A stretch of 64,000 nucleotides of DNA, from contig OX337230.1 of assembly GCA_946965045.2 (NCBI GenBank), positions 4,092,001 through 4,156,000 on the forward strand, in the 5' to 3' direction. Position 1 is the first letter of the stretch; every line of letters begins with the position of its first letter. The position numbers and the translations under genes were made by a program. This DNA comes from Epithemia pelagica (taxonomy: Eukaryota > Protista > Bacillariophyta). This document shows positions 1,781 through 27,510 of the stretch, piece by piece. The notes beneath the pieces were generated by a model. That model was not told where the DNA came from. It was given only the letters and a program-made list of their open reading frames with translations, and did no database searches.

Positions 1781-1835
1781 TTTCCTGGGTGTACTACTTT
1801 TCCTGGGTGTGCTACTTTCCTGGGTGTGCTACTTT
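1781..1835 (+). repeat. ~18-bp tandem repeat x3 (TTCCTGGGTGTRCTACT)
   Basis: Read directly from the sequence. Confidence 0.85.
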
Positions 1836-2736
1836 TTCGTTTGGGCTATTCTAATTTTTCTACACTAAAATAAAAATCAAAGTACAGTAATTTTTCGGGC
1901 TTATGTAGAGTGGGGAGTAGGTGGGGGAGGGGTAGGACGACGAGTGAGAAAGGTAGACGAAAACACCACGTATTCTTGTCCATGAGTGGGAATGACGCAC
2001 AGGTCGGATTATGAAATCCACCAATCACGGCAACTTGATTGGCAACAGTCACCAAACTGCAGCCTGTATGGTAGTTTTCGAGTGGTGGGAGATTCCACAC
2101 GTGGTTGTGGTGTGTATCCAAGATTTCCATGGTTCGATGGTTTCCCGCCACCACCAGACAAGATCCCACGGCAACCACTGTACAACGCATTTCTGGCTCG
2201 GAAAGCACCAGATTAGAGTGAGTCCTCCAATAAGAAGACGAGTAAAAAATCACTGTAGCAGCAGTTGGTCTCGTCGTTCTTACTTGGCGCTGTAAAGTCT
2301 AAATACTCCACCGAGTCAAGATTGCCGTGCTTGTTATGGCCTCCCACGACAAAGATGCGGTTGCCAACAACAGCACTGGCACAGCATGTACGTGGGACGT
2401 TCATGGATGGTCTCTCAATGACAGTTTGGTTCGTGGTATCAATAATCTCCACCGAGGATAAGTCATCTCTCCCCCTGTCCTTTCCACCCATTACAACAAT
2501 ATATCGATTGTGCACCGCAACAGCACAACATCTATATCGTCCCGTTGATAATCGACAGTTTAATGTCGTCCAATAACTCTCATGCGTACTGCTTGTTGTA
2601 AAAGATGATTGCAGTAGCAAATCATTGGAATCAATCCGTTCAATACAATCGAAAAATCCTCGACTGTATCCTCCTAGCACGTAGACCCCACCGTTGCACA
2701 CAACAGCGGCATGCTCCTCACGTGTCTTGTTCATGT

Positions 2737-2930
2737 TGTTGAAACTCACACAGCTGCTGTAAAGGCAAACTACGGAATCTTATTTTACTCATCGAATGAG
2801 ACCTTTTTCCTTTCAGATCTCTTCCCTGCCTTACGTTCCACTAGCGTCCAGTTCTCGCCGTCATCCGCTGCCAGCTGTTCAGTCGCATTAACATGCTTCT
2901 TTGCTATCCCGTCAGCGTGATTCCTCAACA
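2737..2930 (-). repeat. 3' LTR of element A
   Basis: Direct repeat of 8675-8868. Confidence 0.97.
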
Positions 2931-5900: not shown

Positions 5901-7797
5901 TCTCCAAGGCATCGATCGTGGTGAAATAAAGGTGGCGAGAGAGGGTGGTTAGGAACGGGACCCCGTTCACATGCATGATATCCATTGCGATCACGATTTC
6001 ACGGTACTTGGCGTCAATTGCTGGAGGAATGAGGTTGTCGAGTGGGACAGTTGGTGATTTCCGACGTGTTGTCTTGCCCTTGAGTGTGCCGATGTCCGGG
6101 CCATAAATGGCTTCGGCCCTTTTTATGTCTTCTCGTGTGTAGGGGCAATTTGGTAGCATGTTTGTGGACACTATATGAAGGAATTCCTTCGTGGATGGAC
6201 GACCTATGCTTATTTGAAGCTGTCGTGCTCCTCTAGCTCTATCTACATCAGACTGAGAATATTTTGCTTCGTTGTCCTTAACTGTAGTTAGGAAACTATG
6301 CTCATTCTTCTTGGTGTCCATGTAGTAGAGTCCTTGGGTGCTCGGCTTGAACGTGCATTTGACTTTGCCGCTTTTGTCTTGTAATGTAAACTTGTTGCCT
6401 TGTTTGCTGTGATATTCGACTTGATAGTTATTCTTGGCGTTGTGAAAAGAGAGGAGGTTAACCGGTCCATCAGGATCAAACCAAACCACCCCGTACGAGG
6501 GGAGATCTGCAATTTGTGTCAGGACGCGGCTACCGGCGTGGCTGTGGATGGTAATAGGTGTCTTGCTTTTTCTGATGTTTTTAATAAGGTCTTTGTTTGA
6601 AATGATATCAACGGTGGATTGATTATCAAGGAGGATCCATGATCTGGGGATGTTAGCCTGTATAGACGAGGAAAAGGACATAGCGTGAGAGATTGTTTCA
6701 TCCGATTCGGTCACCGTTTGATGTTGCGAACCTTGTTGTGAGCCGTGTTGTTTGTGGTCGGCCGTTCCCGTGTTGAAGGCCACACCAGTGGCATTTTGTT
6801 GTTCTCCGCTGTTTGATCCTGAGTTGCCCTGATACTGGTTCTTGATATTGATGCGGTTGTCGATAATGGCACGGGCATCCGCTAAGGTTGCCGGGTAGTA
6901 GTTCCCACCGTCAAGGAAGGTATTCTGCAGATGCACTTCATAAGATCGATGTCCACAGGTACGTATGAAGCGAATCGCGATACATCGTTCTTGGGCCTCT
7001 GCTTCATCGTCGGGGGTTGGTTTGTTGTCGGTCCGTTTGTTTTTGGTGGCGATTTCAATCAAGAAGTCATGGTCGTACAGTTTGATTCCCATTTCTGTTA
7101 TGAGTTTTACCTTGGAGCGAAAGACTTCATAATAACTCTGCAGTGACTGGTTGTTTTGCCTTTTCAGTCCATAGTATTCTTCTTTAAGTCGATCTCGTGA
7201 TACCGCCGTGTAAACTCGTCCGGAGTCGAAAGTAAACATTGTGGTCTTGATTAATTTGAGCAATGCAATCCCGTCTCTTGCGTCTTGGATTGCCTGGAAT
7301 TCTTTTTTAGCTCGCAGTTTGTCACGGAGGAGCGGGGTACATTGACCCAATAAAACGCTGTAGAAGGACGATCGAAAGCCGTTGTAGAGAATGATTTGTT
7401 CTTCGCGGGCCTTGAACTTGAATTCCCATTCCTTTCCGATGAAGAAGTTATCGGCGTCCTCATCCTTTGGCTTGACAATAGGATCTGGATCGTTGAGCTC
7501 CAATTGCTCGACTGCTTTTTGGAATTCCATGTTGTATTTGCTGTGGTTTGCTCCGACATACCCAACAAGTAGTTCCACGTTCTTCAAATATCGTTTACTT
7601 TGGGGATCTTCAGAATAATCAAAGGTGCAGTCAGCCAAACTTGGCTCCTGCCCTTGAAACTTGTTGCTGCCTTGTCCGCCTCGCCCTCGACCGCCACGGC
7701 CACGTCCTCGGCCACGACCGCCACGTCCGGTTCGATCTTCATTGTTGTTGGTCGATGAGGAGGGAGCCCCATCAGGACTCGGATTCTGAGCACTCAT
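2785..7797 (-). CDS. Gag-Pol polyprotein of copia element A (1670 aa)
   Basis: Protease WILLDNQSTVD; integrase IAMDIMHV / LADGAF / EHVGDIERRIRTIKER; RT VVDIPGAF, KALYGTLRAA, WHVDDLKISH; RNase H WIDASYA, SSTESE, YQDNQSA, KHINIRYF, ADFYTKPLQG. Confidence 0.97.
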   Translation of the reverse strand: MSAQNPSPDGAPSSSTNNNEDRTGRGGRGRGRGRGGRGRGGQGSNKFQGQEPSLADCTFDYSEDPQSKRYLKNVELLVGYVGANHSKYNMEFQKAVEQLELNDPDPIVKPKDEDADNFFIGKEWEFKFKAREEQIILYNGFRSSFYSVLLGQCTPLLRDKLRAKKEFQAIQDARDGIALLKLIKTTMFTFDSGRVYTAVSRDRLKEEYYGLKRQNNQSLQSYYEVFRSKVKLITEMGIKLYDHDFLIEIATKNKRTDNKPTPDDEAEAQERCIAIRFIRTCGHRSYEVHLQNTFLDGGNYYPATLADARAIIDNRINIKNQYQGNSGSNSGEQQNATGVAFNTGTADHKQHGSQQGSQHQTVTESDETISHAMSFSSSIQANIPRSWILLDNQSTVDIISNKDLIKNIRKSKTPITIHSHAGSRVLTQIADLPSYGVVWFDPDGPVNLLSFHNAKNNYQVEYHSKQGNKFTLQDKSGKVKCTFKPSTQGLYYMDTKKNEHSFLTTVKDNEAKYSQSDVDRARGARQLQISIGRPSTKEFLHIVSTNMLPNCPYTREDIKRAEAIYGPDIGTLKGKTTRRKSPTVPLDNLIPPAIDAKYREIVIAMDIMHVNGVPFLTTLSRHLYFTTIDALESTSMEHVFQCLKRTVNLYRRTDLRPRILLADGAFKNDYMEQQLATIGMALNPAARNEHVGDIERRIRTIKERMRATYNMLPFDIIPKIMVIELAKQAVFWLNSFPHQGGISDTISPQELVTGSRLDYHRHCRYEFGEYVQCHEEHDNSMSARTVGALALRPTGNRQGGFYFLSLASGRVINRNHATKVPMPQGVIDRIIKLAEAQSAQPGLAFGNRDNRILLLDDDNEIFNEDDDEDYEPEQDQDEDLRYDAEFVAEELADEPLGPVDEEMDMDNPDPAPTADNEHNDLERAMGTNEGVVEEMGLMGPMEEVAEEMSEEEEESMEEPNEDLGVMANEDNDDIESNNDRQGRDNNINEDVETVAGVETVADDNDIPIDMGQEEDHEDGHESGYNLRPQRERSYTHRFGYNNATFHFNEQEQGTMDGYIHDGWLFVADSGEISMATPQMPMSKGLKIFGDQGVAAVKKEITQLHERGVIRGVHKTSLTSNQLTNALGYLMFLKRKRNGKIKGRGCADGRKQRLYIPREDAASPTVTTEAVFLTAIIDALEHREVAVVDIPGAFMQADMDPDVHMRIDGIMAKLLLEVDEAAYRPYLTYEKGKPVIYVDMLKALYGTLRAARLFWEKLSIVLKDWGFILNDYDTCVANKNIDGTQCTITWHVDDLKISHVKEETVSMIINQLIKEFGQLGELSISRGKRHDYLGMYLDFSEPGVLQVDMTPYVATVLDDIPQDMIGKALTPAAAHLFLINENCKPLDATRAELFHSMTMQLAYLAHRGRPDIRTAIAFLCTRVSKPDEDDYRKLIRVIKYLQNTKDLILRLEANKHGVLRWWIDASYATHNDMKGHTGANLCMGRGSVISHSTKQKLVARSSTESELIGAHDVLPTIVWTRNFLKSQGVKIKDVVVYQDNQSAMLLENNGRMSSTKRTKHINIRYFYIKDRIQNKDLRIEYCPTDQMVADFYTKPLQGQLFYQHRDAIMNILPTSPYHSAQRSVLRNHADGIAKKHVNATEQLAADDGENWTLVERKAGKRSERKKVSFDE

Positions 7798-8636
7798 TAT
7801 TCTTGAGGAGGACGAACGGCCAAGCTTATGTTGTGCCTCTGGCGGCGGAATTCTTCGTTCCTGTTTATGGCGTAGTTCCAGACTCTAATGGTATAGTATA
7901 CCGCTCCGATCCTAATTACGGTCCCGTGCACGTGATAGTGCACTCCTTGTCTTGCGAGCCGACAACTGTTGAGGATTCGTACGTACGATCCGATCCGGAC
8001 AGTTTGGTCTTGAATTAGTTGTGGCTCTTGTGGTTGTGCTTGTGGTGCTGGAGGTGCACGTCGTGCTGGTCTTGGTGCCGGTTGAGGTGCGTGCTGCACT
8101 GGTTGCAATACGGCTGCTGCCCGTTGCTGAGCTTCGATGATTGCTCCGGCAAATTCTGGGTCAAGCACAACAGGTTCCGGAACCGGTGCTGCCTCGTTCA
8201 CTTCGGGGATTGGTACGACTACCACGTCCTCTTCTTGATCGACTTCTTCGTCGGAGTCTTCAACGTCCAATACAGCGACAGGTGGACGACGTTGCTCAGC
8301 GAGAATGGCTGTTGCCAATTCTCTCTGCGGACCTGGTGGACCGTGAAGGTGGATGTGGGTTTCTTCGAGGTATGTCAATAATTCTTCTTGTCGTCGACGG
8401 TAAACAGAACGGGTTCGACTGATGCCACTTGCCAAACGATCTAACTGGTCTGAGAGGTTTTGCCGATGCGCCGCTTGGAGGGCCTCTTGGGCCTCGTTGA
8501 AGGACCGAACACTATCGGCACGCTCCGTCTCGTGCTGTTGTCGCAATTGCTCCAGCGCTTCTTGTTGTTGGTTGTCTATCAGAGCCAAATTGTGAAATAC
8601 CTCGAGTATATCGTTGATGGCTTCAGTTACGTTCAT
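7797..8636 (-). CDS. Extra 5' ORF of element A (279 aa from first ATG): coiled coil, acidic linker, C-terminal KOW/SH3-like beta domain
   Basis: Long open frame between the 5' LTR and gag. First ATG is 8636; the track start at 8687 is a GTG inside the LTR. Its TAA (7799-7797) overlaps the gag ATG (7797-7795). Confidence 0.8.
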   Translation of the reverse strand: MNVTEAINDILEVFHNLALIDNQQQEALEQLRQQHETERADSVRSFNEAQEALQAAHRQNLSDQLDRLASGISRTRSVYRRRQEELLTYLEETHIHLHGPPGPQRELATAILAEQRRPPVAVLDVEDSDEEVDQEEDVVVVPIPEVNEAAPVPEPVVLDPEFAGAIIEAQQRAAAVLQPVQHAPQPAPRPARRAPPAPQAQPQEPQLIQDQTVRIGSYVRILNSCRLARQGVHYHVHGTVIRIGAVYYTIRVWNYAINRNEEFRRQRHNISLAVRPPQE

Positions 8637-8660
8637 ATATGTATGATATGAAATCGATGT

Positions 8661-8674
8661 TTCGATGAGTAAAA
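8661..8674 (-). promoter_or_regulatory. PBS position of element A, complementary to LTR-internal 8721-8734 (putative self-primer site)
   Basis: Plus 8661-8674 TTCGATGAGTAAAA is the exact reverse complement of plus 8721-8734 TTTTACTCATCGAA. It has no TGG start and no GGTTATG motif. Confidence 0.75.
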
Positions 8675-8868
8675 TGTTGAAACTCACACAGCTGCTGTAA
8701 AGGCAAACTACGGAATCTTATTTTACTCATCGAATGAGACCTTTTTCCTTTCAGATCTCTTCCCTGCCTTACGTTCCACTAGCGTCCAGTTCTCGCCGTC
8801 ATCCGCTGCCAGCTGTTCAGTCGCATTAACATGCTTCTTTGCTATCCCGTCAGCGTGATTCCTCAACA
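8675..8868 (-). repeat. 5' LTR of element A
   Basis: Direct repeat of 2737-2930. Confidence 0.97.
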
Positions 8869-9099
8869 CATGTGTGGTCCTTGTCGCCACTGCTGCTTAT
8901 TGGGATCTGCTAAATTTAATACAAGAACGGAATTGACAATTCCTTGGCCTCGTTGACGTCCTCCCAACACGACAACCGTCTGCCCCTTGTTGTTGTTGTG
9001 GTTGGAATCGTTGTCCTGATCGGGATGATTCAGTACGACCGTAGCATGATCGTAACGCCATCCTCCCTCGAGAGGAGGCCAATTGGTTTCATTCCATTG

Positions 9100-9595
9100 C
9101 GCTGTTTCGTCCGGTAGGAAAAGCCCCGACTGCCATGCTTGTTCTTTCAGTGTGGTGGTGGCCATCATTGTTCCGTCGAGCAAAAGTGTCGGATGAGCAA
9201 ATCGCGTATTGTGGTTGAGAATGGAGAGGTTTCTGTACATACAGCACACGATGGAAATGGACCACAACAAACGGACGGCGGACGGACAAAGGCGAACGCT
9301 GGGGGGGGGGGCACAACACGAAACACCCCACGTTCCACCCTAAATCTCAATATATTCTGGGCAGTGCCTCCGGGTACCTCCGCATTTTTTGGGCGATATA
9401 TAAAAATGAGTAATGCCGTCACACTTTTTTCCCTTCTCCGTTTCGGCAAGAGCACAAAACAACAACAACACACCCACCATGGGACGCTTTTATCTTGAGG
9501 ATGACGACCACAATGACACTAGGGTTACGACGAATGGTGGAAGAACTTGGCCCTTTGTGGCACAAGAAGGAGAGGAAGGATCTCTCGTCCCATAT
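9100..9595. repeat. Segmental duplicate of ~14400-15010 (Kelch 5' end, intergenic region and first codons of the torsin-like gene)
   Basis: ATGGGACGCT(T/A)TT(A/G)TCTTGAGGATGACGACCACAATGACACTAGGG at 9478 and 14898. The copy at 9478 is truncated after about 40 codons. Confidence 0.85.
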
Positions 9596-10937
9596 GGTAT
9601 GGACGAATGCACGGGGGAGGCACTCGGATCAGCCCCCACAGGAGACAAACGACGACGAATGGCGGAGCTTGAATTGCGTCGGACATTGACTGGGGCTCTG
9701 CTAAATGAAGGTTGCAGATCGAGGGCTCAGAAAAGAACGAACCACAGTCCAGACAGAAGACCCATTTCAGCAAAAAAACAACCACACACGGCAATTGAGA
9801 GTTAAACAGCAAGGAAGAAAATCCCAGCATCAGCCTGGATCCCCTATACATGGGACGTTGATCTCAGCCCCAAAATGAAACAAAAACAGGTGGAGCACTA
9901 TGGAGAACGAGGCGCAAAAAGGAGTGGCGGGGGGAAACCGTTACAAAAGGTATGAAAGAGGCCCATAAAGAGGCAGCGCATGCCGTGCTTGCGACATCTC
10001 TTTATGGTCTCGTTCATTCCTTTTGCACGGATATGCCTTTACCACAATGGGCCAACACAAAAAGTCATTGATTGAGGGGCGCGCGCAAGTCTCATTCTAG
10101 ATTTGGAATGTGGCTGGATACGGACTGTGGCTCTCGCCCATATGACTATCAGTAACGTGTGCACATTCCAGCGCTCTCGCCGAATGCAGCAATCCCAACC
10201 ACCACACCCTATTCGAGCTATTATATGGGGTGTGGTGTTTGTGATAAATGCCCAGGCGAGGAAACCGGATCAGCTGCAACGGGAAACGACTTTTGGCGGA
10301 GGTTCCATGGACGAGTGACGGAACCAACCAGTTCCAATGGATTCCTCACAACTCATGGAGAAGCATCCGATGCCCGAATAGCAATGGCCGAGTATTTGAT
10401 GGGACAATGCTGGCAATTCATGGATTTGTGAATGGTGCCTTCCCAACGGGCACTCAGAATTGCTCTCAAACTGCCAGAACAAACGTTGTGTGTTGTGCAA
10501 TGAAATGATTCGAGTACAATGAGATGATTCCAGCATCTCATTGTACTGGAATTATTTCATGGCGCAACGCATTGCACAACACAAAGTTGACATTTTCAGG
10601 AGATGGATTCAATCCATTGAAAAATGGTTGTGCAACGAGACGAAACAAGGTCGGCACAGTAGCGCGCGCGAACCCGGAAATACCAGTGCTTTGTTGTGCC
10701 GTATCATCTATGGAGCCCGATGGAGTAACGCCATTTTGTCGGTAGAGGTTCCTTTATCTGTTTTGTTTTCGATTGACCGGTACTCCTACGACCGACAGAC
10801 ACCTCCGTTCTCAAACAAAACCATCCATTTCTCGTGAAATCAGTCGTGCTTCCAGTCCGCACCCATCAGCATGAGCACATCACAGCGGAGCACAGCAAAC
10901 CACCGAATCATAAATTCTGCAGTCAACGTTTGGAACC

Positions 10938-12040
10938 ATGAGCATGACACTGAAAGAACAAGCATGGCAGTCGGGTCTTGTCCTACCGGACGAAACAGCA
11001 GAATGGAATGAAACCAATTGGCCTCCTCTCGAGGGAAGATGGCGAATCGAACATGCTTCGGTCGTACTGAACCATCCCGATCAGGACAACGATACCAACA
11101 ACAAGGGGCAGACGGTTGTCGTGTTGGGAGGACGTCAACGAGGCCAAGGCGTTGTCAATTCCGTTCTTGTATTAAATTTAACAGATCCAAATAAGCAGTG
11201 GCGAGAAGGACTGCCTATGAATAAGAGTCGTGAAGGACATGCCGCTGTTGTGTGCAACGGAGGGGTCTACGTGATGGGAGGATTCCATGGAAGATATTCG
11301 ATTGTATGGAACGGATTGATTGCAATGATTTGCTACTGCAATCATCTTTTACAACAAGCAGTACGCATGAGAGTTATTGGACAAAATTGAAATGTCGATT
11401 ATCAACGGGACGATATAGATGTTGTGCTGTTGCGGTTCACAATCGATATATTGTGGTAATGGGTGGAAAGAACATGGTGAGAGACTTATCCTCGGTGGAT
11501 ATTCTTGATACCAGTGACCACACTGTCATGAAGGCACCATCCATGACTGCTCCACGAGTATCTTGTTCCAGTGCGGTCGTTGGCCACCGCATCTTTGTCG
11601 TTGGAGGCCATAACGAGTACGGCAATCTTGACTCGGTGGAGTATTTAGACTTTGTAGTGTCAAGTGAGAACGAGGAGACAAGGGTCGAAACTGCTGCTAC
11701 AGTTACGTCCTCCCCGTCTTCGTCCTCTTGGACGACTCACTCGGATCTGGTGCTTTCCGAGCTACGACTTTATTGTACCGTGGTTGCCGTCGGATCTTGT
11801 CTGGTGGTGGCGGCAAACAATCGAACCATGCAAGTCCTGGACACGCACCACAACCGCGTGTGGAATCTCCCAGCACTCATAAATCACCATAGCTGTAGTA
11901 TGGTGACGGTTGCCAATCAAATTGCTATTATTGGTGGATATGAGAATCCAACCTGCGCTACACTGCCACTCATGGACAAGAATTCGTGGTGCTTTCAACT
12001 ACTTTGTGAGCAGCATCCAAACGCATGTTCTCATTCATGA
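10938..12040 (+). pseudogene. Kelch-repeat gene K2 with one frameshift near 11295
   Basis: ORFs 10938..11390 and 11252..12040 carry the N- and C-terminal halves of the family sequence in different frames. A true lesion cannot be told from an assembly indel. Confidence 0.85.
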
Positions 12041-12659
12041 AAAGAAGGAGTGGGTATGAGTATTTGTTGGGACAATGCTGGCAATTCATGGATTTGTGCA
12101 TGGTGCCTTCCAAACGGGCACACTCCGAATTGCTCTCCAACTGTCGGAACAATGAAATGTTGTGTTGTGCAATGAAATAATTCGAGTACAATGAGATGCT
12201 CGAATCATCGTGGAATCATTTCATGGCACAACACAAAGTTGACATGGACTGTAATGCAACGACACACAACCGTGACGGCATCCACTTTGGTTGTGTCGAC
12301 CCAGCGAGATTCCATCATGGTGATTCCATCATGGTACACAGTATGTGAGTTGGGATGGTGTGGTGGTGCATTGTAAATATGAGTTGGGATGGTGTGGTGA
12401 TGCATTGTAAATGACGTGACAAATAGGATACACAACATAACTAAGGAGTTAACATGATCTTCCTAAAAGCTCGTGACGTCAACATGACAAGTATTGGAAA
12501 GTAGATCCTCACTGATATTGCTTCGTCACGTGATATGCAACCTGTTGCACCGTAAGTGCCATCATCTTCGTTGTACCACCATGTCAGACATGTATTGGTC
12601 CTGACAAGGTTGTGCAGGATGTTGCATTCCCATTGGGGATACCCACTCCTTCTCATCAC

Positions 12660-12880
12660 GAATGAGAGCATGCATCCGTTTGGAGGTTGCTCACAGAGTT
12701 GACGAAAACACCACGAATTCCTATCCATGAGTGGTAATGACGCACAGGTTGGATTATCATATCCACCAATCACGGCCACTTGATTGGCAACAGTCACCAT
12801 ACTGCAGCCATAATGGCGATTTTCGAGTGGTGGGCGATTCTACACGTGGTTGTGGTTGTGGTTGAGGGGCGTATCCAAGA
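12660..12880 (-). pseudogene. Kelch gene C-terminal fragment
   Basis: MVTVANQVAVIGGYDNPTCASLPLMDRNSWCFRQLCEQPPNG matches the family C-terminus; there is no upstream part. Confidence 0.75.
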
Positions 12881-13297
12881 TTTCCACAAAGATTGTTTTG
12901 TTGGAGAACAAAACGCTTTCTACTATAGAATTTGAAATATAATGATTATTCTCCACACAATTTCGCCATTTTAGGACATGGAGACGCTACATCAGCTCCG
13001 GATGGATCCATGAATCGATGTGGTCTTGCTTGTTCTCGTGACAAATGAGAGGCACAGACGTTTGCCGTAGACTCATGCAAAACTAGCGTAAGGAATGGGC
13101 GCATTGTCCTGGAACGGTTGACTTGTGTTTACTACAAAGCGTTGCGTCCTTTGTTGGAGCTTATGCGAATCCTAGTAGTTACTTCGTCCGAAACCAATCA
13201 CTGCAATGTAGTCGGCGAACGCCCAATTCTATTACAACAACCAACAACCAACACAAGTGTCATCCTTCCGTTTCGCAAGGTCGATTTCATTCCATTG

Positions 13298-14449
13298 CTA
13301 ATTCCATCCGTTTGGAGGTTGCCCACAGAGTCGTTGAAAGCACAACGAATTCTTGTCCATGAGTGGCAGTGTCAAACAGGTAGAATTCTCATATCCACCA
13401 ATAATGGCAACTTGATTGGTAACAGTCACCATTTTGCAGCCTGTACGGCCATTCTCGAGTGATGGGAGGTTCCAAACGCGGTTGCGGTTCGTATCTAATA
13501 CTTCCACGGTTCGACAATGTCCTCCCGCCACCACCAGACAAGATCCCACGGCAACCACTGTACAAGAACATTGTGGCCTGGAAAGCACCAGATCAGAGTG
13601 AGTCGTCCAAGAGGACGAGGAAAAAGTCACTGTAGCAGCAGTTTCCACCTTTGTCTCCTCGTTCTCACTTGGCGGCGCTGTAAAGTTTAAATACTCCACC
13701 GTGCCAAGTATGTCTTGATTGTTATCGCCCCCAACGACAAAAATGCGATGACCAACGACCGCACTGACACACCATCGTCGTGGAACAGCAAGGCTTGGCC
13801 CTGCAGTGACAGTATGGCTCGTCGTATCAATAATCTCCACCGAGGACAAGGTCGCCATGTTCTTTCCACCCATTACAACAATATATCGATTGTGAACCGC
13901 AACAGCACAACATCCATATCGTCCCGTTGACAATCGACAGTTTAATGTCGTCCAATGACTCTCATACGTACTGCTTGTCGTAAAAGATGATTGCAGTAGC
14001 AAATCATTGGCATCGATTCGTTCGATACAATCCATATATTCGTCGTCTATTATACTGTATCCTCCCATTACGTAGACAGCTCCGTTGCACACCACAGCAG
14101 CACGTCCATCACATTTCTTGCTCATGGGTGGCCCTTCGCGCCACTGCTTGTTCGATTCTGCCAAATTTAATACAAGAACGGAATTGACAGGGCCGACAGA
14201 GCCTTGGTCATGTTGACGTCCCCCCAACACGACCACGGTTTGTCTCGCACTATTAATGTGGGTGTCGTTCTCACGGTTCGTATTCGTATGATCGCGAGGA
14301 TGATGATGATGATTCAGTACGACCGTAGCATGCTGGAAACGCCATCCTCCCTCGAGAGGAGGCCAATCGGTTTCATTCCATTGCGCTGTTTCGTCCGGTA
14401 GGAAAAGCCCCGACTGCCATGCTTGTTGTTTCAGTGTGGTGGTGGCCAT
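13298..14449 (-). CDS. Kelch-repeat protein K3 (open frame)
   Basis: Repeated GG-Y/W Kelch units (VYVMGGY, IVVMGGK, IFVVGGD, LVVAGGH, VAIIGGY). Likely start MATTTLKQQAW at 14449. Confidence 0.9.
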   Translation of the reverse strand: MATTTLKQQAWQSGLFLPDETAQWNETDWPPLEGGWRFQHATVVLNHHHHPRDHTNTNRENDTHINSARQTVVVLGGRQHDQGSVGPVNSVLVLNLAESNKQWREGPPMSKKCDGRAAVVCNGAVYVMGGYSIIDDEYMDCIERIDANDLLLQSSFTTSSTYESHWTTLNCRLSTGRYGCCAVAVHNRYIVVMGGKNMATLSSVEIIDTTSHTVTAGPSLAVPRRWCVSAVVGHRIFVVGGDNNQDILGTVEYLNFTAPPSENEETKVETAATVTFSSSSWTTHSDLVLSRPQCSCTVVAVGSCLVVAGGHCRTVEVLDTNRNRVWNLPSLENGRTGCKMVTVTNQVAIIGGYENSTCLTLPLMDKNSLCFQRLCGQPPNGWN

Positions 14450-17172: not shown

Positions 17173-20100
17173 CTAGGATCCTTCCGCAGGAGGCATTGAG
17201 GTATGAAAGGGTCCATTTTGGGCTCCAAAAATATTGTCGGGATCCATGGCCTCTTTGATTTGCTGCAGGGCCTGTCGCGTCGGAGGCGACTGGACCTGGT
17301 CCAGGAAATGGGACCGATGTTTGCCAAGGCCATGATGATGACTCAGCGATCCACCGCATCGCAAAATCTCTTGCCGGGCACCTTCTTCCAACTGGCCAAA
17401 GACGGACAAGGGATCCACAATGCCCTTGGAACTCATGCACAAATAAAAGTAGAGACACACGCCATCCGAATAGAGTTGCGTGACACGACACCCCAAAAAG
17501 GGTTTTCCGGGTAGATGGAGACGTTCGTGTAGTTGACGAACCACCGTCTTGGTTCCTTTTACAATCGAGTGTACCGTGGACCAGGGAGCAAAGGTTTCAA
17601 AGGATTCTCCCAGAATCTGGTAGCTCATGGCAAAATCACGTAGATAGGCAATCATAAAGGTCATTTCGTAGGCGCGTTGACCAGCCTGTCGACCCAGGCG
17701 AAGGCCTCCGTAGGACTTGGTCAAGCCACGAATCATGGTTTGTTGCGCTTGTACCTCGGCCTGGGAACCTTCGTATCCCACTGCCAGACACACGGCACGG
17801 CTCTTGTTGTTCTTGTTCAGGAACAGGGCCAATAAGGAATGAGCTAGTGTTTCTTTTGCCTTTTCGTACAAGGATTCGGGGTCGGGACGAAGGGCTTGAC
17901 CCAGTTGAAAATGTTCATGATCCAGTAAACGAACACTGGCCGGAACGAGAGTCGATTGCCGCGAAAGGTCTCGAAGGAGATGTACCCCACTCTCCCAATC
18001 GGGCAACAAGATTGCCTCGTGGTCACAAATCTCGGGCAGTCGTTGAATGCGCAAGACGGCCGAGACTATAATCCCCAAACATCCTTCGGATCCCAGTAAC
18101 AAGGCCGTCAGGTCGACACCACAGGATTCTCGTCCCCAATGGCCATGGTTCATCAACCCTCCTGCTCCCACCACTTGGATTCCAGTCACAATATCTTCAA
18201 TATTGCCATATCGGTTCCGCTTCATACCACTCGCTTTGGTGGCAATCCAGCCGCCCAGAGTACTGAATTCCATACTATCCGGTTCGTGTCCCACCGTGTA
18301 GCCGAAACGGTTCAACTGCTCATTCAACTCCTTGCCCGTAATGCCAGCCTGAACGTGGGCCAGGTGATTTTCGTAGTCCATCTTGATCACTTGATTCAGT
18401 TTACTCATATCAACCGAAATGATCGGACGGGGCTCTTGTTGAATGGTGGGACAACAGATGGCTCGGGAAACGCACGTTCCACCACCATAGGGGATGAGAC
18501 ACCATTGTCCCTTGGCCAAGGTCACCAGAGCGAGGACCTCGTTGGACGTGGCAGGCCAAACCACCACGTCCGGAATACGGAGTTTCTCACCAAACCGAAT
18601 GTTGTACACGTCGGACAATGCATGCCCCGTGCCGTGACGGGTCCGGTCGTGAATATCCATAGAAACTGTCTGGCATACTTGGCGAAGCGATTCTACTTCG
18701 GCTTGCCCGAGCGCTGACGCCATTGTAGCTTCGTGTTCATCTAGTTTGACAAGAACTCCGCATTCTTCTGTTGGATCGATCTTGACCCCAACTGCTTTCT
18801 CCACGAATGGAATCAACTTGGAGAATCGTTTCCCGCCACGCATATAGCGATCCCCAGTGACGGACACATGGGGTCGGTCTGTTCTCGATACATTCAAAAC
18901 AAACGACGTATCATGAAACCCCCAAAAGCCAAGCCTCTCTTTCGACGGCAGGATATACGGATGGATTGGAGTCACCGATCGAGGTTTCGTCCGTTTCAGG
19001 GTTCCAACCGCCTTCACACCCGCCGCTGCTCGGAGCAAAATGACAGGTACCGTTTTGTCGTTCCTCGATGCGAGCTGTAATACATGATCTGCCGCTGGAT
19101 CGGGGAATCCATCCTGCTTTAATTGCTGGATTGCGTTGGCGATTGCTTGGTCCGCTCGCGCAAATTGGTTTCCCAGGCACTGGGCCACTTGCCTCACTTT
19201 GGCCGAGTCCCGAATTTCTGTGGACACACCAGCGAGAGGGATCTTACTCAGCCACAAAGACCAGCGGGGATACTCCTCTCGGATTAATGGCTCATACACA
19301 TGTGCCATATGCAACACAATCGTCCACAATTCACAATCATCCTCCGGAAGCGTCAATTTCTGGCTGATTGCAGTTTCGTTTTCCCATCTCGGGCAATTCA
19401 TCGTCTCAAGACAAGTTGCGATGGTCTGTTCGGAAAGGGAAAAGAGTTTGGCAGCGGCAGCAATGTGGAACGAAGAAGCCACCAATAGCTTCTGCTGTCG
19501 CCTTTGAACTTCCAGAGCTACGGCTTCTGCGGAACCTTTCAAATTCTCTCCAACCGGCAAGATGGGCGCTGCGGCAATGTGGATTCGTCCAAGTGAAACT
19601 TCTCCAGCTACTACTCGCTGAAGTAAACAACGCAAGAAATGTGAGGTTCCATTCAGTGCAGAGGTTTCTCGTTTCAAAAACAATCCGCAACATGTTACTG
19701 ACCCTTAACCAAGAGACAAGACCACTCAAGTTCAATCCATGCCCAGCGCCGTCGCGGAGCTCCGACGACAGAGCTTCCTGCTCTGCAATTCGTTCGTAGT
19801 TGATTGTGATTGGCAGAATGGCACACGATGGATCTGCGGCTTGGATCTGACGGATCAGCCCCGTCTTGGGTGGGACAAATCGCCGATCCCTGCTTCTAGT
19901 ACCTTCAATATACACCTCCATGACCACAGACTCATTCGACAAGCATTCGGCTACTTCCTTGGACGCTTGATCAACACCTGTTTTTCCACGTCCACGAAAC
20001 ACATAAAACATGCGAAACAAGGGTATGATCCAGGCGAATATGGGAAGACTGCTAAATTCAAAGGCGGCAGCAATGACCGGAAGGTCAATCTGCAACTCCG

Positions 20101-23100
20101 GGACAGAAAAACAAATAAAACTGACCAGCAGAAAATCAAAGAACGATCGATGGGTTGGTGCCAGAAGAAGCCTGCGTTTGGCCGCTGGCAAGGTTTCGCG
20201 TAAATGTTTAGCGAAGGAACTCACGTCCACTGTAACCTCACTGCAAACTCGGCGAAGCAGGATGGAAAGAAACCAAGCGGCAAAACGCTCCGGAAAACGT
20301 CCTCGAGGCTGCCCAAAGGCCCAAAGTAAATCACTGAACCAAGAGGAATGTTTCCGTCGTCCAGCAATGATTTTTCTTTCAACGCTCCGGTCCCCACTCT
20401 GGTCCTTTTTCAACTTGACCGAGAATTTGTGTGCTGCCAACGCACTCTGAAAAGCATACCGATCCCCCACAAACTCGGACGGAGCCACCAACTCCGAAGA
20501 AAAGTAGTAGGATGTTGTAGAAAAGGAGAGAAACAAGACTGGCAAGTCCAGAAAGGGCAGGACCCGGCGTGTCTTGGTGCAATCCAGACTAATCCATTCC
20601 GCTACGTGAATTGCCAGGGTAAACGGGCCAATGACGAGCCATGAATGTAGCAGTCGATAGAGATCAATCCCTGGATTCAAACGAGGCATGACTCGCGTGG
20701 TGACAAAAAGGCCAATGCACGCTGTAAGACGACTAAAGTATCCCATAAAGGCACCCAGCTGTGTCACAGCAACCGCAAAGTCCAGCCAGCTAAACAAAGC
20801 ACTTGATGGAGAGGCAACATCCCACGTAGCATTGTAAATTAAAGCACCATGGGAGTTTGTGTCCTCCTGGTGGCGTTTTTCACCGTTGGTCAGACCTCCT
20901 GGAGAATGATGATACCCATTCTGCCTTGTACGGTTCCTTCTTTCGAATGCCTTTTTCAAAATAAATCGTGAAAGCACATCGACCGGGATACAAGGAACGA
21001 TTTGAGGACCAAAGTACCAAAGATTCCATTGAAAGTTCAGGTAGAGACAGGCCGCGGCGACAAAGGTGGATGGTTTCTTTCCCGACCATCCCTCAAAGGG
21101 GTACTGCACAGCCGGCCCCACAATACTGGGTCGAACAATGACCGTCTTGACGCTCGATTGAGTCAAGAGGTGTTCGCAGACACATTTGCTAAAGGTGTAG
21201 GTATTGGGGAAACCAGACTCTTGGTAGCATTTCGAGGCCAGGTATTGGGAACCCAGCATGGACTGATACACTTCCGAGGCATGGTAGGGTTCCAAGGAGA
21301 AGAGTTTCTCGGGGAGAGGTTTGGACCGACTGCCGGTTTGGGATCCATGGACAAACGCCGTGCTCAAATGCACAAAGGTTACATTGGGATGCGCCATGCG
21401 CGCCGTCAGTTGCTGTAGTTCCAAGGGAGCCGAAATGTTGCATCGGGCCGCCTGCTCGAGGGGTTGGGTGAAATGAACAGCGGCTGCACAATGAAAGACA
21501 TGTGTAATGGAGGTATCCGTCAAGAGTCGTCTTTGATCGGAACTGGACAAGCCCAAGCCCGGTAATGTGACGTCGCCTTCCATGACTTGTAGTAACTTGT
21601 CTAACGATTCCTCTGTGGCTGTGAGGGAGGAAAATAATGGTTGCGACAAGAGGGTACGAATACGTCGAGAGGCTCCTTCGCCCTTTTTCGCTCGACACAA
21701 GACGATAATTTTGTCGAGACCCAATTCCCGGTAGTGTTGGATGAGATCGTACAGTAGCATGGATCCAATAAAGCCCGTCACACCCGTCACAAATACCGTT
21801 CGTTTCGGGACGTTGTCGTCATTGTCCGAAGATGGCAGTTGCAGACAGTGCAAGGCTTCCATGACGGGAGGAGGATCTGTGTCGTGGTGGGAATCGCCCT
21901 CGGAGGCGCCGGGGTTTGCTTCGTTTTCGTGACGACTCGTGATGAGTCCACAATACCGGGCAAAGGCATGGGAATGATGGAGGTAAAAGTCCGCCATGGA
22001 CCATACAATGAACCACACAAAGACGGCGCCACACACGGCCATTCCCAATACCACGGGGAGACAGGTCCATACCACCGAACGTGCATACCACATGACCACC
22101 GCCATTAATCCGAGACTCGCTTGATACCACTGTCGTTTCGTCCGTGACATGTTGGGAGTGTGTGAGAAAGTGGCACCCTGGTTGGAAGCAAAGGTGGTCG
22201 AAGCAGCCTCGAGTGCCGCACACAAGTCGGCTCGGTCGTGGGGCAAAGCCAGCGACGACAACGAGGTGATTGGCAGGTACAACAAGTCTTGCATCCACGT
22301 GTGGGCCTGTGGACAACCCGGGACAGTCACCAGTTGCGAGGCACTCCGTGAGACATCCCAACCATGGTGAAACCGAATCCAATCCTCCACCGTCGTACGA
22401 TTCGACTTGTTCTTGTCCTCCTCCATGGGTGGTTTGTGTCGGGGATACCGAATGGGCAACAACCAAAAGGTGGGTGCCGCTGCCGTGGAATCGACCTTCG
22501 TATTCTTGGGGACGGACGGATATCGAATCGGTACGTAGGAGGCTGGCAAGCGCTGAATCACGTCGACTCCACAGGCACGTCGCATCTGGACCACGTCTCG
22601 AGTCTGGGATGCTTGTTGCAAGCGACGCAACATCAAGGCCAACAAGGGCACACAGGGTTGACAGCGCACTTGTTGTAACAACTGTCGATTTGAACCAGAC
22701 GACGACGACGAAAAACCTCGTACCATGGATCGAGCCACGGAATCCAAATTATATCCCCAAACTTGAACGACTAACCACACCATCCACTGGTACACGATCG
22801 GATGCTGTGTCACGAGTCGAATCCCCAGAGCCGGAAGGACACTCCGCAGCAAATAGCTCGTGACGGACTGTGGTCGATACAAGGCGGACGAGTCTTGCAA
22901 TCGATTCATTTGCTGCCCCAAGGAATCCACCGGCGGTTTCGTGCCGTGGTTGTTGTGGTTGTCGGCGTGGTCGTCATGGTTCCGGGTGTGTTGTCGTACC
23001 ACCGCCAGGCCTCCACCGAGGGCTGTCGCCGTTTTGATGAAACCAAAGGAAAACAAGGACATGTCAGCTTGGGGCGCGCCCAGGTAGCCCCCGTGACCAC

Positions 23101-24538
23101 TGTACACTTGAGCACAATCTTCCACCACGTCCAAGGAATGGGCAGTGGCCATGGATCGCACAGTGGACCAATCGCATTCGGTCACAACCCCAAACACATG
23201 AACGACCACAATGGCCACGGTCCGATCCGTCACACACGCTTCCAGGGCGGCACAATCCACCTGCAATGAGTGTTGTGGAAGTGTCGTTGTCGTGGTCGTT
23301 GTTGTCGTGGTGGAAGTGGCAAAGTCGACCCCGACGGCTTGCAATTGATGATGCTCCAAAATGGCCAACATGCCGGGAACGGTAATGGGAGGTGTGATGA
23401 GGACTTGCGACCCCGGCGGAAATTGACGGGCCACGAGATAGAGATCCCACAAGGATCGCACCGAACGTCCCACCACCATCGATTCCGACTTGGTATTGTC
23501 GTGGTTGTTCTTATTGTTGGAGGAGTCGAGGTGGTTCCAGGCCCGGCCAATATCCTTGGTCAATTGATGCCGCTGGGAAGAACACCCTTGTGGTGACATT
23601 ATTCGTGTCAGACATTGATGGGCCGTCCACGCCAAATCGGCATAGGAAATATCCAATTGTCCTCGCGGAATCAAGCCTCGGCTGGATCTTGTAGTGGTTT
23701 CAAGAGACGATAACGAAACGGGTCCCTTACTGCTCGATGCAAGGGTGGAGGGACCTTTGCCTGTCTCCATCCCAACAGTATTCGTCGGGTCGTCCTTCTG
23801 CTTGTTGGTGATCTTCTTGAACGACTGGATCCGTGTCTCGTCATTCTTCTTGAGCGCGGATCCATTGGTTCCACGGCCCGGATCCATTTCTTGGCGATTC
23901 TTGTTCTTGTTGCTCTGTGATGGGTTACTCCGTTGCAGTTTCTGGTAGTGGAGTCTTAAGGCGTGAACATGGTCCTGGAGGGCCGGCGAGTGCGCCGTGG
24001 CCAAGTCGAGATAGGCTTGCAGGGCAGACTGTCGTGTGTCGTGGCGACAGGCCTTCCAGGCCTGATACTTGGCATGGGCCGTCGGTTGAAACAGGGCTGA
24101 TGGTTGCGGCTGGTCGACCGGACAGGGTCCGACCGTGACATGCTTGTACCATCCATACAAGCGCAATTGATCCGCAATGGAAATGCTGCGGCTGCTGCTG
24201 GAGGACGATGGTGCCTGACTCCGAATCCATTCCGCCACGTGATCAAACATCCACTGCAATCGCGTCTCTTCTTCGTCGTCTTCTTCGTCTTCCTCGTCTT
24301 TGGATCCTTGACTATGTTGGATGGAAGCATTGTCGTCCATATTCGACAGTTCCTGTCCGACTCCAACCGGTTCTGGTTGTTGTGGGTCCCCAGATTGGAT
24401 CGTCGTCGGCTTGCCATTGTCGAACCCTTCCTCGACGACGACGACCGCCGGATTATTCTCTGCGTTGTTAGCGTCGTCATTTTGGACAGTCCTTCCAATG
24501 TGTTGCTCCTCTTGGAAATCATTGATTCCGTTCATCAT
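17173..24538 (-). CDS. Multidomain fusion ACBP - DegT-type PLP aminotransferase - TM - fatty acyl-CoA reductase - DHAP/G3P acyltransferase - alkyl-DHAP synthase (exons 24538-19703 and 19617-17173, ~2426 aa)
   Basis: An 85-nt phase-0 GTCAGT...TTCAG intron (19702-19618) joins the two track ORFs in frame. Motifs: [107 protein letters not shown]. Confidence 0.9.
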
Positions 24539-25018
24539 CCTTGGTTGGCGTCTCCTGCAATCGTCGTCTTTTGTTCGACACCGAAGTCTCTCTCTCGTTT
24601 TCAGGTTTCTTTCGGGGGTGGATAGAGGTGTGTGATTCTCTCTCTATATATATAAATATATCTCTTGCGTTCTGTGTTCTTCTCTCCGGTAGGAGCCATT
24701 CATTGAGAGGTTAGTAGCCTTTTGTGTCATTGCTCTTCAAACGCCATTACCACACATCGTGCGTGGAGGTGCGTGGTTTTGTGTGGTCGACGGAGGAATG
24801 GATATGTCACGCATAGTTTGTGCGACTGCATATTCCACTGTGACGCGCCGGTCGAGAGTCACACATGTTTTGTGCGACACGATCGACGAACTCGTATCTT
24901 TTTTGATGTGTCACTTGGACGGTTTTGTTCCTATGCAGTATACATCCCAGTCCAACGTTCCACGCTGTCTCTCTCTCTCTCTCGATCTCGATCTCGATCT
25001 CATCCTAAATCTCGTCGT

Positions 25019-26650
25019 ATGAATCGCCGCAGTCTCCTTCGCGGTTCGGTGGTCCTGCAGGGCGCCTTGTGTTCGGGCCCATCTCCATCATGGTCCTATT
25101 CTTACTCTCCTACGACGACTGGCAGTAGCAGTCGGACGAGGAGTATTGTCACCCAGACGTTCCACAACCAACCAAATGGCAACAGTCGTGGTACCTCCTT
25201 GTTGTTGTTGTCGTCGTTTGTGGATCCAACCACCACCGCCGTATCCGGTCCATGGCGCAAGCGACCCTGCTTTGTCCAGCATCAGAGGACTATGCATGCC
25301 ATGGTGGCGTGCAGCAGCAGCAGCAAGAGCAACAACAGTCCGCACAGTTGTGCAAGAGGAGCAGGAGTTCAGCGATTCCTAACCTCCTCCTCCAGCAACA
25401 ACGACAAGGACGACACCAACGACGACACGACCTCCAGCGAACAACAACATGCCATGTTTTTGCAACAAATGGAGGATTTGAAAGAAGAACGACAAGCCTT
25501 GTTTGGCTTTACCCAAGACGAACAAGAGAGTTGGATGCAAGCAGCATCCCATGGTCACAAGCATTCCTCGTCCTGGATGGAACAAATTCATCAAGCACGA
25601 CGACAACAAAAAGAAGAAGAAGAAGACAGCTCCGAACCAAATGCACCCTCCGGTGGACCAACCACTGTTGTCGAACCGAACCACAATGACAAACAACAAG
25701 AACAATCCGTCGTCTCTCAGCCCTTTACGCACCTACAGTCCCCAAACACCACCAACACAAGCACCAACCAAGAAGAAGAGTCCTGGTCCATTCACATGGT
25801 TAATGTGGGATCCAAACCTTGCACGGAACGCCTGGCCGTGGCCGAATCGCGCCTCGTCTTTCCCGAACATGCCTGGGAGGCCTTGACCACCACAACCACC
25901 ACAACTACAATGACTACAACCCCCACGGACCTGGTGGGACCCAAGGGACCCATTTTCACGACTGCCAAAGTAGCTGGCATTCTGGCCGCCAAGTACGTGT
26001 GTGTCGTGCGTTGTTTTTGTGTCTTGTGTGTGTGGGTTGTCCATCGTGTGTCGTACAATGGTGGCTCACTCTCTCACACAAATAATGGTCTCTCTCTCTC
26101 TCTCGCTCTCTCTCTCTCTCTGTGTTTCTCGTGTTTTTTACGATACCATGATACTGATGATGATATCTATTATATATACATAGAAAAACCAGTGACTTGA
26201 TTCCTCTCTGTCATCCACTGCCCCTGACCAGTGTGGACATTGCCATTGACTTGGATGCGACAACACGAACCGCCATTGTCCAATGCACGTGTCGTGTCAC
26301 TCACCAAACGGGTACGTACGTGTGTTCTGGTCGTTCCATGTATATTATAGAATACACAGGCGCATACGCCGGTTGTGTTGGTGGTGTGGTTCGTGTAGAG
26401 TTGTCGTCACATTGGTTCTCACTGCAGTGTGTGCGCTGGATTGTTGGGGAAATATATATCCACTATAGGGGTCGAAATGGAAGCCTTGACGGGTGCGACC
26501 GTCACGGCCTTGACCATTTACGACATGTGCAAGGCGATCAGTCACGAGATTGTCTTGACCAGTACGCGATTGCTGAAAAAGTCGGGTGGCAAAACGGACC
26601 ACTCGGACGAACCACGCCACGAATCCCAAGACACCAAACACACAGAGTAG
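25019..26650 (+). CDS. moaC: Cyclic pyranopterin monophosphate synthase (MoaC/MOCS1B/CNX3) with probable mitochondrial presequence (exons 25019-25992, 26184-26311, 26469-26650)
   Basis: [40 protein letters not shown] and TIYDMCKA are restored by two GTACGT...TAG introns. Arg/Ser-rich N-terminus. Confidence 0.93.
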
Positions 26651-27510
26651 CCCGATTTGTCCTGCAGAATCGTTGGTTGTGGGAGAGAGGAAGGAGAGAA
26701 AAAGAGAGCAATGACTGTCGATTCGCCAAGACGGTAGACCAAAAACATCCATTGGGTCGAGAATGCCAGAACTAGAAGGTCCATCCAGTCTATCCTACCA
26801 GTCATGTTTGGAACAGACATGCGCTCTACCAGAGCAGAGATGGAGAACGAGGGACCAGTCTTTCACCACCACTGTTGGTGCACCCTGAACAAACAACCTT
26901 CTCTTCAACCTGAACAAACAACCTTCTCTTCAAAAGAACAAACTGACATACGGCACCAGTAGCTTTCGCTGTAATACTTCGTAGGTAGGTAGGCATTTGG
27001 GGGGGGAGGGACATCGATCATAGGAGTAGTATAGGGGACCCATCTTGGATTTTGGATTGGCACCATAGCGCCATGCAAAATCTCTTGTTTCGAATGGGCG
27101 TTTCTTTTTGTCGTTCATCTCTGCGCAGCGACGACCACACCATATAGAAGGAATATGGATCTATCAACATATGCTCTCTCATAGAAAGTCGTGACAAAAC
27201 CATACGAGAGCTTCCAAAAAGGCGAGAGAGAGAGAGAGAGAGAGAGTTATTAGAGCTATAATATGGTTAGAGGTAGGAAAAGCGTCGGTTCTGCTCAGTC
27301 GCACATGGCGTGGCCTGTCGCGCCTGACGCACGACGACGGATTGGCCATGATGGATGATGGGGAGAAAAATGACTCAGCGCGAGACAATGGCAACATGCC
27401 CTGGACAAAAAGTCAGCGAGATGGATCCATCCTCTCGCACATACGGATGAAGATTCTCATAAAGCGTGCTCCCACATAACTTGTTTCAAAGCCCAGACAA
27501 GTATAGAACC

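Follow-up and report, generated by a model that had tools for sequence, protein, structure and literature searches.

A fusion of a fatty acyl-CoA reductase (FAR) with a GNPAT-type acyltransferase, called FARAT, has been described in Tetrahymena, Dictyostelium, Discoba and myxobacteria, alongside the MXAN_1676-1674 operon of M. xanthus (PMC13012113, PMC7375469). A 2026 survey lists FARAT for Ciliophora alone among the Diaphoretickes groups and makes no mention of diatoms or of an aminotransferase (PMC13012113). Here we analyse a 64,000-nucleotide stretch of the diatom Epithemia pelagica (GenBank assembly GCA_946965045.2, contig OX337230.1, positions 4,092,001 to 4,156,000 of the forward strand; hereafter the window, whose coordinates are used for the diatom gene), which encodes on its minus strand a predicted two-exon protein of 2,426 amino acids (aa) with, in this order, an ACBP domain, a DegT-like aminotransferase domain, a membrane hairpin, a FAR, an acyltransferase and an AGPS. 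Similar to FARAT, this protein carries FAR and the dihydroxyacetone phosphate (DHAP) acyltransferase on one polypeptide, working with AGPS to start ether-lipid synthesis. Compared to FARAT, it is extended N-terminally by the ACBP and DegT-like domains and C-terminally by AGPS.

In every organism studied, alkyl-DHAP is reduced by a separately encoded short-chain dehydrogenase (SDR) (PMC13256971). These acyl/alkyl-DHAP reductases (Ayr1p, DHRS7B/PexRAP and the Dictyostelium ADHAPR) are NAD(P)H-dependent SDRs that turn the C2 ketone into a hydroxyl, whereas a DegT-like enzyme, with an unrelated fold and cofactor, would turn the same ketone into an amine. Amination of DHAP itself to serinol phosphate, dependent on pyridoxal phosphate (PLP), is known from RtxA (PMC3222319) and from Cj1437 of C. 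jejuni (PMC11800397). The C2 amination by Cj1437 and by RtxA's N-terminal domain is the chemistry that we propose here; unlike the diatom domain, neither enzyme is fused to lipid enzymes, and their products go into capsule decoration and rhizobitoxine, respectively, and not into lipids (PMC11800397, PMC3222319). Our best reading, which we put forward tentatively and at somewhat less than even confidence, is that the DegT-like domain aminates the C2 ketone of lipid-bound DHAP, with alkyl-DHAP as the favoured and acyl-DHAP as a possible substrate.

A PLP aminotransferase domain in a diatom ether-lipid fusion protein

The initial annotation of this stretch had recognised a DegT/DnrJ/EryC1/StrS-like domain with the Asp of VVEDCAQ and a PLP lysine at 22270-23680. 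Pfam, a profile comparison with the Protein Data Bank (PDB) and a structural model confirmed both the domain and its location, while the fold proved slightly wider (22139-23686). The features encoded upstream of AGPS are as follows.

24002 to 24247, minus strand: ACBP domain, aa 98-179 (Pfam PF00887, E 6e-14)
22139 to 23686, minus strand: DegT-like PLP aminotransferase domain, aa 285-800 (Pfam PF01041, profile against the PDB, AF2 model, orthologues)
21989 to 22126, minus strand: hydrophobic hairpin between the DegT-like domain and FAR, aa ~805-850 (Kyte-Doolittle peak of 2.51 at aa 827-845)
20960 to 21790, minus strand: FAR domain (NAD_binding_4), aa 917-1193 (Pfam, E 1e-44)
19802 to 20206, minus strand: PlsC/GNPAT-type acyltransferase domain, aa 1445-1579 (Pfam PF01553, E 6e-16)

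Pfam DegT_DnrJ_EryC1 (PF01041) matched aa 423-534 at 51.4 bits, above its cutoff of 19.8 (E 1.3e-13), a match that spans just positions 96-204 of the 360 in the profile; the full fold is wider (approximately aa 285-800). A profile of 32 diatom orthologues matched 56 solved DegT-family structures over both the large and the small domain (best E 4e-21), which is far beyond chance. An AlphaFold (AF2) model from the orthologue alignment (pLDDT 82, pTM 0.86) superposed on ArnB, GDP-perosamine synthase, PseC, WecE and DesV with Z scores of 25-27 and a root-mean-square deviation (rmsd) of approximately 3.1 A over roughly 335 residues (for ArnB 1MDO, Z 27.1, rmsd 3.2 A and 335 residues), and the top 50 structural matches were all of the DegT family (VIA). 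The best PDB match, 7N63, was considered as the C. jejuni DHAP transaminase and rejected, as it is HCAN_0200, a sugar aminotransferase of Helicobacter canadensis.

VVEDCAQ occupies aa 471-477 (23108-23128, minus strand) and the PLP-lysine segment aa 497-510 (23009-23050, minus strand). They contain the two predicted catalytic residues.

23117 to 23119, minus strand: Asp474 of VVEDCAQ, predicted to pair with the pyridine nitrogen of PLP (counterpart in 7N63, the Asp of IIEDCAQ)
23033 to 23035, minus strand: Lys502 of SFGFIK, predicted Schiff-base lysine (counterpart in solved DegT enzymes, the Lys of FSFYPGK)

Both also line up with their counterparts in 7B0D and were invariant in every alignment made. 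R8, D12, R77, E189, D190, S213, K218 and R341 (domain numbering) are invariant among the 32 diatom orthologues. Because the catalytic residues are invariant despite a mean column identity of 34% in this alignment, the domain is, as judged from its sequence, an intact PLP fold under selection for catalysis and no relic, with predicted activity. A run of ten threonines (aa 410-419; 23282-23311, minus strand) lies in a surface loop of the domain with low model confidence and is not present in other diatom orthologues.

The named homologues of the protein are all from diatoms (Fistulifera solaris, Nitzschia inconspicua, Skeletonema marinoi, Amphora coffeaeformis and Discostella pseudostelligera), with an identical architecture of FAR, acyltransferase and AGPS in Fistulifera, Nitzschia, Skeletonema and Discostella. 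Overall, the diatom DegT-like domain was joined to these three partners in 36 of 37 hits.

A distinct DegT subfamily shared with bacteria

A word-index search with the excised domain retrieved stand-alone bacterial proteins of approximately 400-425 aa with 26-36% identity. The diatom domains and the bacterial proteins have in common the motifs PRxxLDIxWxDL, LSVRS and RxRPSxxLLxLLxRRL, the motif of the PLP-lysine segment and an insert, whereas canonical DegT proteins in the same alignment are without the subfamily motifs and keep SGT(D/A)AL (SGTDAL). Since SGT(A/S)AL is replaced by (L)SVRS throughout, these relatives form a separate subfamily within the superfamily, and alignment accordingly places the diatom domain in the DegT superfamily as a member of a distinct, uncharacterised subfamily. 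Its characteristic features are found in the window at the following positions.

23633 to 23674, minus strand: N-terminal motif LIPRGQLDISYADL (PRxxLDIxxxDL), of which R and D are invariant (alignments)
23450 to 23470, minus strand: GRSVRSL, that is, SVRS with an invariant Arg (R77) at the place of the SGT phosphate-binding motif (alignment against the canonical SGTDAL)
22697 to 22924, minus strand: subfamily-specific helical insert of ~75 aa, aa 539-614, not in canonical DegT proteins (helices at model residues 256-323)
22619 to 22669, minus strand: VRCQPCVPLLALMLRRL, with the motif RxRPxxLLxLLxRRL and the invariant Arg R341 (alignments)

The insert, which measures approximately 60-75 aa across the subfamily, is amphipathic and basic in bacteria and rich in Trp and hydrophobic in this diatom, and it may be an interfacial or lipid-binding lid.

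The DegT sugar aminotransferases (ArnB, PseC, perosamine synthase, WecE and DesV) share with the diatom domain the fold, the Asp of the ED motif and the Lys of SFxxxK. Compared to them, however, the diatom domain is only 13-22% identical, has SVRS for SGT and carries the N-terminal PRxxLD motif and the insert, and the partners of its subfamily are lipid and DHAP enzymes rather than nucleotide-sugar enzymes. No subfamily member tested reached the cutoff of an NCBIfam equivalog (ArnB, WecE, PseC, LegC, DesI or RfbH); at best, the diatom domain scored 43 bits and bacterial members scored 89, compared to cutoffs of 375-650.

An exhaustive profile search gave 913 representative clusters for the subfamily at E<=1e-30. 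In a genome scan with one genome per species we found 173 relatives and read the neighbourhoods of 80 that were kept (the genome loci below); these come from Planctomycetota, Cyanobacteriota, Acidobacteriota, Verrucomicrobiota, Gemmatimonadota, Myxococcota and others. The diatom domains formed one clade (SH-aLRT 99) outside the sampled bacteria in a quick maximum-likelihood tree, for which SH-aLRT was the sole support measure and bacterial rows shorter than 330 aa were left out, and no donor lineage for the diatom clade could be named on this tree.

Fusions and gene neighbours of the subfamily

Clustering of all flanking ORFs (open reading frames) of the 80 genome loci gave no universal neighbour, so that the evidence from context consists of recurrent minority contexts and of fusions. 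The recurrent partners all concern the glycerol-phosphate/DHAP backbone or are ketone-making enzymes. Fusions of a DegT-like domain with DAO/DAO_C domains occur in at least seven clusters (Thermodesulfobacteriota, Bacteroidota and others), and the C-terminal half of one of them (P0206) matches the glycerol-3-phosphate dehydrogenase 3DA1 (E 6e-63) as well as alpha-glycerophosphate oxidase and E. coli GlpD. The product of GlpD/GlpO-type glycerol-3-phosphate dehydrogenases is DHAP. In three independent loci (L166, L167 and L172), an acyltransferase encoded separately lies ahead of the DegT-GlpD fusion gene or overlaps it, and in another (L165) CdsA and a CDP-alcohol phosphatidyltransferase lie 3 kb from it. 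At L172 (5423-10003), a gene of the Lgt family (PF01790, prolipoprotein diacylglyceryl transferase) stands between the acyltransferase and DegT-GlpD genes, all on one strand. At least 14 clusters join a PlsC-type acyltransferase to a DegT-like domain. In three Pseudanabaena/Phormidium genomes the beginning of the DegT-like gene overlaps with PlsY, and one bacterial-type protein has the DegT-like domain followed by ACBP, which is the opposite of the diatom order. Amination at C2 of the DHAP skeleton is thus well supported by gene context, and the partners GlpD, PlsC, PlsY and AGPS (see below) argue against a nucleotide-linked keto-sugar or cyclitol as the substrate. The suggestion of the initial annotation that the domain may aminate alkyl-DHAP is therefore supported in part, for the C2 amination of this skeleton, while the same contexts do not single out alkyl-DHAP over DHAP or acyl-DHAP.

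Two further contexts involve other enzymes. Fusions of approximately 870 aa with DprE1/alditol-oxidase-like FAD_binding_4 domains were found in at least 44 clusters, and a DprE1-like oxidase is encoded directly upstream of the DegT-like gene in four genome loci (L043, 8516-9958; L046, 8334-9938; L050; L061). By appearance these are oxidise-then-transaminate pairs; one example (L171) adjoins LptF/LptG. In three Rhizobiales loci (L063, L069 and L072; approximately 7800-13700), a GFO/IDH/MocA oxidoreductase, a protein of approximately 300 aa, the DegT-like protein, a class-III aminotransferase and an APH-family kinase are encoded together, an operon reminiscent, with a kinase and two aminotransferases, of a pathway for aminocyclitols or amino-polyols. 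A nucleotide-sugar gene was not a recurrent neighbour in the 80 genome loci.

Linkage to AGPS and the position of the candidate reductase

Co-occurrence with AGPS, which the initial annotation had raised, was found in part: in addition to the diatom fusions, three genome loci link the two genes. In a member of the Verrucomicrobiia (L021), an acyltransferase, AGPS and the DegT-like gene (4-nt overlap) are followed by a convergent FAR. The cyanobacterium FACHB-502 (L074) has an acyltransferase, a HAD protein, AGPS and the DegT-like gene, and in a member of the Gemmatimonadaceae (L057) the DegT-like gene lies approximately 4 kb from AGPS-FAR-HAD. Similar to L074 and L057 with their HAD genes, the Campylobacter pathway includes a HAD phosphatase, Cj1435. 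The AGPS-linked DegT-like genes belong to three phyla and fall in three phylum-typical parts of the tree; therefore, linkage to AGPS arose or was kept independently. No informative lipid neighbours were found beside the sister genes of these members (L035, L077, L054, L037 and L060). Divergent from the L074 cluster, a 1,697-aa protein (827-5920, minus strand) combines FAAL (AMP-binding), acyl-CoA dehydrogenase, PP-binding and NAD_binding_4 reductase domains; it may supply an unsaturated fatty alcohol or aldehyde.

For the reverse comparison, 80 metagenomic loci were fetched by AGPS (L085-L164). None of the 80 contained a DegT-like gene, which indicates that this gene is an accessory of AGPS operons and not a core part. 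The common layout was instead [HMG-CoA-reductase-like]-acyltransferase-AGPS-SDR, with an acyltransferase directly before AGPS in 34 of 66 loci. Of the 70 loci with room downstream, 54 encode an adh_short SDR of approximately 268 aa directly after AGPS and in the same orientation. Its position and the known pathway point to this SDR as the evident candidate for the alkyl-DHAP reductase. A protein of the HMG-CoA-reductase family (~385 aa; PF00368, E 1e-101) is encoded in 31 of the 80 loci, directly upstream of acyltransferase-AGPS-SDR in L097 (6089-7246) and L100 (6080-7231), where it may be a four-electron acyl-CoA-to-alcohol reductase standing in for FAR.

In L021 and L074, the DegT-like gene holds exactly the position of the SDR directly after AGPS, and no SDR was present in any of the three DegT-linked AGPS loci within the sequence fetched (up to 10 kb each side). 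This replacement, seen in two operons, is the strongest support for the proposal of the initial annotation that an aminotransferase stands in place of the alkyl-DHAP reductase. That proposal had been argued from the lack of a separate acyl/alkyl-DHAP reductase domain in the fusion. The observation itself is correct, as Pfam found no adh_short domain in either ORF of the diatom gene and no other reductase besides FAR, whose NAD_binding_4 is the sole NAD(P) domain. The argument is weak, however, because the alkyl-DHAP reductase is separately encoded in every studied organism, so that a domain missing from the fusion says little.

Proposed reaction and alternative explanations

AGPS is known to require the C2 ketone of its substrate, and amination is for this reason coherent only after AGPS, or on an acyl-DHAP branch. 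In the route that we infer from these contexts and from established enzymology, the FAR domain would supply the fatty alcohol, the acyltransferase domain would make acyl-DHAP, and AGPS would swap the acyl for the alkyl group. The aminotransferase domain would then aminate the lipid-bound intermediate at its C2 ketone, drawing on an amino-acid donor, a step that is done reductively by a short-chain dehydrogenase in ordinary ether-lipid synthesis. The product would be 1-O-alkyl-2-amino-2-deoxyglycerol-3-phosphate, an O-alkyl-serinol phosphate. A substrate that is phosphorylated and membrane-bound would go well with the amphipathic insert and with the invariant arginines (R8, R77, R341 and the RRL motif).

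A broader reading, on which we are more doubtful, is that the widespread, so far unrecognised subfamily catalyses the committed step towards a new lipid backbone, in which C2 amination of (alkyl/acyl-)DHAP leads to lipids based on serinol phosphate; its members come from diatoms, cyanobacteria, Planctomycetota, Verrucomicrobiota, Bacteroidota and others. In diatoms, the 2,426-aa assembly-line protein would on its own yield 1-O-alkyl-2-amino lipids, from which N-acylated, "ether-ceramide-like" lipids would follow. If true, there would be a second exit from alkyl-DHAP, with an amine for the hydroxyl at C2, that is in no textbook scheme. It would bring a lipid class not yet described, amino-ether or, when N-acylated, ceramide-like, to diatoms, which are major primary producers of the ocean, and to several abundant bacterial phyla, and it would be a route to sphingolipid-like amides without serine palmitoyltransferase. 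It would also give a function to a family of some 900 clusters now labelled "perosamine synthetase" or "dTDP-4-amino-4,6-dideoxygalactose transaminase", explain the orphan fusions with glycerol-3-phosphate dehydrogenase and acyltransferases, and define a mass series for lipidomics to seek.

Several points weigh against amination of a lipid-bound ketone. Its support is genomic context together with sequence and model comparison. The exact replacement of the SDR occurs in only two operons, both on short contigs, and "instead of" the reductase may be "in addition to" it. Approximately 65 of the 80 bacterial loci have no adjacent lipid gene, and the Rhizobiales context and the many DprE1-like fusions may mean that the subfamily has several ketone substrates. 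In the diatom protein the DegT-like domain is N-terminal and far in sequence from AGPS, and the SGT phosphate-binding motif is altered to SVRS, so that PLP binding stands as a prediction. In the open-access literature, where absence is no proof, we found no report of amino-ether glycerolipids in diatoms and nothing relevant on a transaminase for alkyl-DHAP, on serinol ether lipids, on alkyl ethers of diatoms or on the diatom fusion.

The alternative that survives best, although we consider it unlikely, is that free DHAP is aminated to serinol-3-phosphate, a 2-amino analogue of glycerol-3-phosphate which then serves as an alternative lipid backbone or head-group alcohol. The GlpD/GlpO fusions, with free DHAP as the product of the fused enzyme, point first to this substrate and not to a lipid-bound ketone. 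PlsY, whose gene overlaps the DegT-like gene in Pseudanabaena, acylates glycerol-3-phosphate; CdsA and the CDP-alcohol phosphatidyltransferase near one GlpD fusion would fit as well, and DHAP aminotransferases are already known (PMC3222319, PMC11800397). In the diatom protein, however, amination of free DHAP would drain the substrate of the acyltransferase and AGPS domains on the same chain. Likewise, the amphipathic insert, which suggests work at the membrane surface, and the position that the DegT-like gene takes over from the SDR in L021 and L074 speak for the lipid-bound ketone.

That the domain acts on another carbonyl, for instance an NDP-keto-sugar or keto-cyclitol for a glycolipid head group, and is fused for co-regulation only, appears improbable. 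The solved relatives are all sugar, cyclitol or AHBA-type enzymes, the Rhizobiales cluster with its GFO/IDH/MocA, class-III aminotransferase and APH-type kinase genes is aminocyclitol-like, and the oxidases of the 44 or more DprE1/alditol-oxidase-like fusions belong to oxidisers of sugar or polyol hydroxyls. Nevertheless, the low identity to any characterised sugar aminotransferase, the NCBIfam scores far below cutoff and the lack of a recurrent nucleotide-sugar neighbour are at odds with it, and it leaves the links to GlpD, PlsC, PlsY, AGPS and ACBP unexplained.

We give still less credence to a role other than transamination, be it as a dimerisation scaffold, as a module sensing PLP or amino acids, or in another PLP reaction such as elimination or dehydration. 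The change of SGT to SVRS and of the GEGG after the Lys to ALGGG would agree with such a role; DegT enzymes are obligate dimers, so that the domain could dimerise the megaenzyme, and the family includes the dehydratases ColD and E1. However, in the DegT dehydratases His replaces the Lys that is kept here. Diatoms and bacteria, at approximately 30% identity, share without exception the Lys, the Asp, several Arg and the Ser of SFxxxK, and stand-alone bacterial members of approximately 400 aa cannot be mere scaffolds. Conversion of a fatty aldehyde from FAR to a fatty amine, as by the thioester reductase and transaminase pairs of polyketide alkaloid pathways, is the least probable. FAR does follow directly on the DegT-like domain in the diatom protein, and the FAAL-ACAD-ACP-reductase megaenzyme lies beside the L074 cluster, but AGPS requires a fatty alcohol, an acyl reductase is missing from most of the bacterial fusions and neighbourhoods (GlpD, PlsC, PlsY), and the known reductase-transaminase pairs use class-III aminotransferases.

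Gene structure and neighbouring features

Before splicing, the diatom gene appears as two ORFs in different frames, of 1,710 aa (19406-24538, minus strand) and 836 aa (17173-19683, minus strand). We treat them as one gene because diatom homologues align continuously across both, changing frame from approximately 19706 to 19629. The full-length homologues, of 2,220-2,343 aa, align in frame 1 to approximately 19706 and carry on in frame 2 from approximately 19629-19674. The predicted structure is as follows.

19703 to 24538, minus strand: exon 1, aa 1-1612, with ACBP, the DegT-like domain, the membrane hairpin, FAR and most of the acyltransferase (long ORF and homologue alignment)
19618 to 19702, minus strand: predicted intron of 85 nt, GT..AG, with a frame shift of +1, between the acyltransferase and AGPS parts (sequence)
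17173 to 19617, minus strand: exon 2, with the end of the acyltransferase region, a linker and AGPS (Pfam and AGPS homology)

The last codons of exon 1 read W-L-R and are followed by GT, and the predicted spliced coding sequence of 7,281 nt translates into the 2,426 aa with a single terminal stop. Within exon 2, Pfam identified FAD_binding_4 (18157-18573, E 4e-31) and FAD-oxidase_C (17224-18012, E 6e-31), and the AGPS part shares 39.6% identity with its cyanobacterial counterpart in L074 (E 2e-132). The only runs found for the gene, four sets of DNA contigs from one study that cover 19000-23700, showed many single-base differences and no indels and crossed the intron unspliced; variation of this kind across the gene would fit intact alleles of related strains or haplotypes.

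At 24722-26775 on the plus strand lies a gene with a MoaC domain (molybdenum cofactor biosynthesis), divergent from the fusion gene. The domain is divided between two ORFs that overlap in different frames, with profile positions 1-55 in 24722-26200 and 58-97 in 26197-26775, which suggests a short intron or a frameshift.

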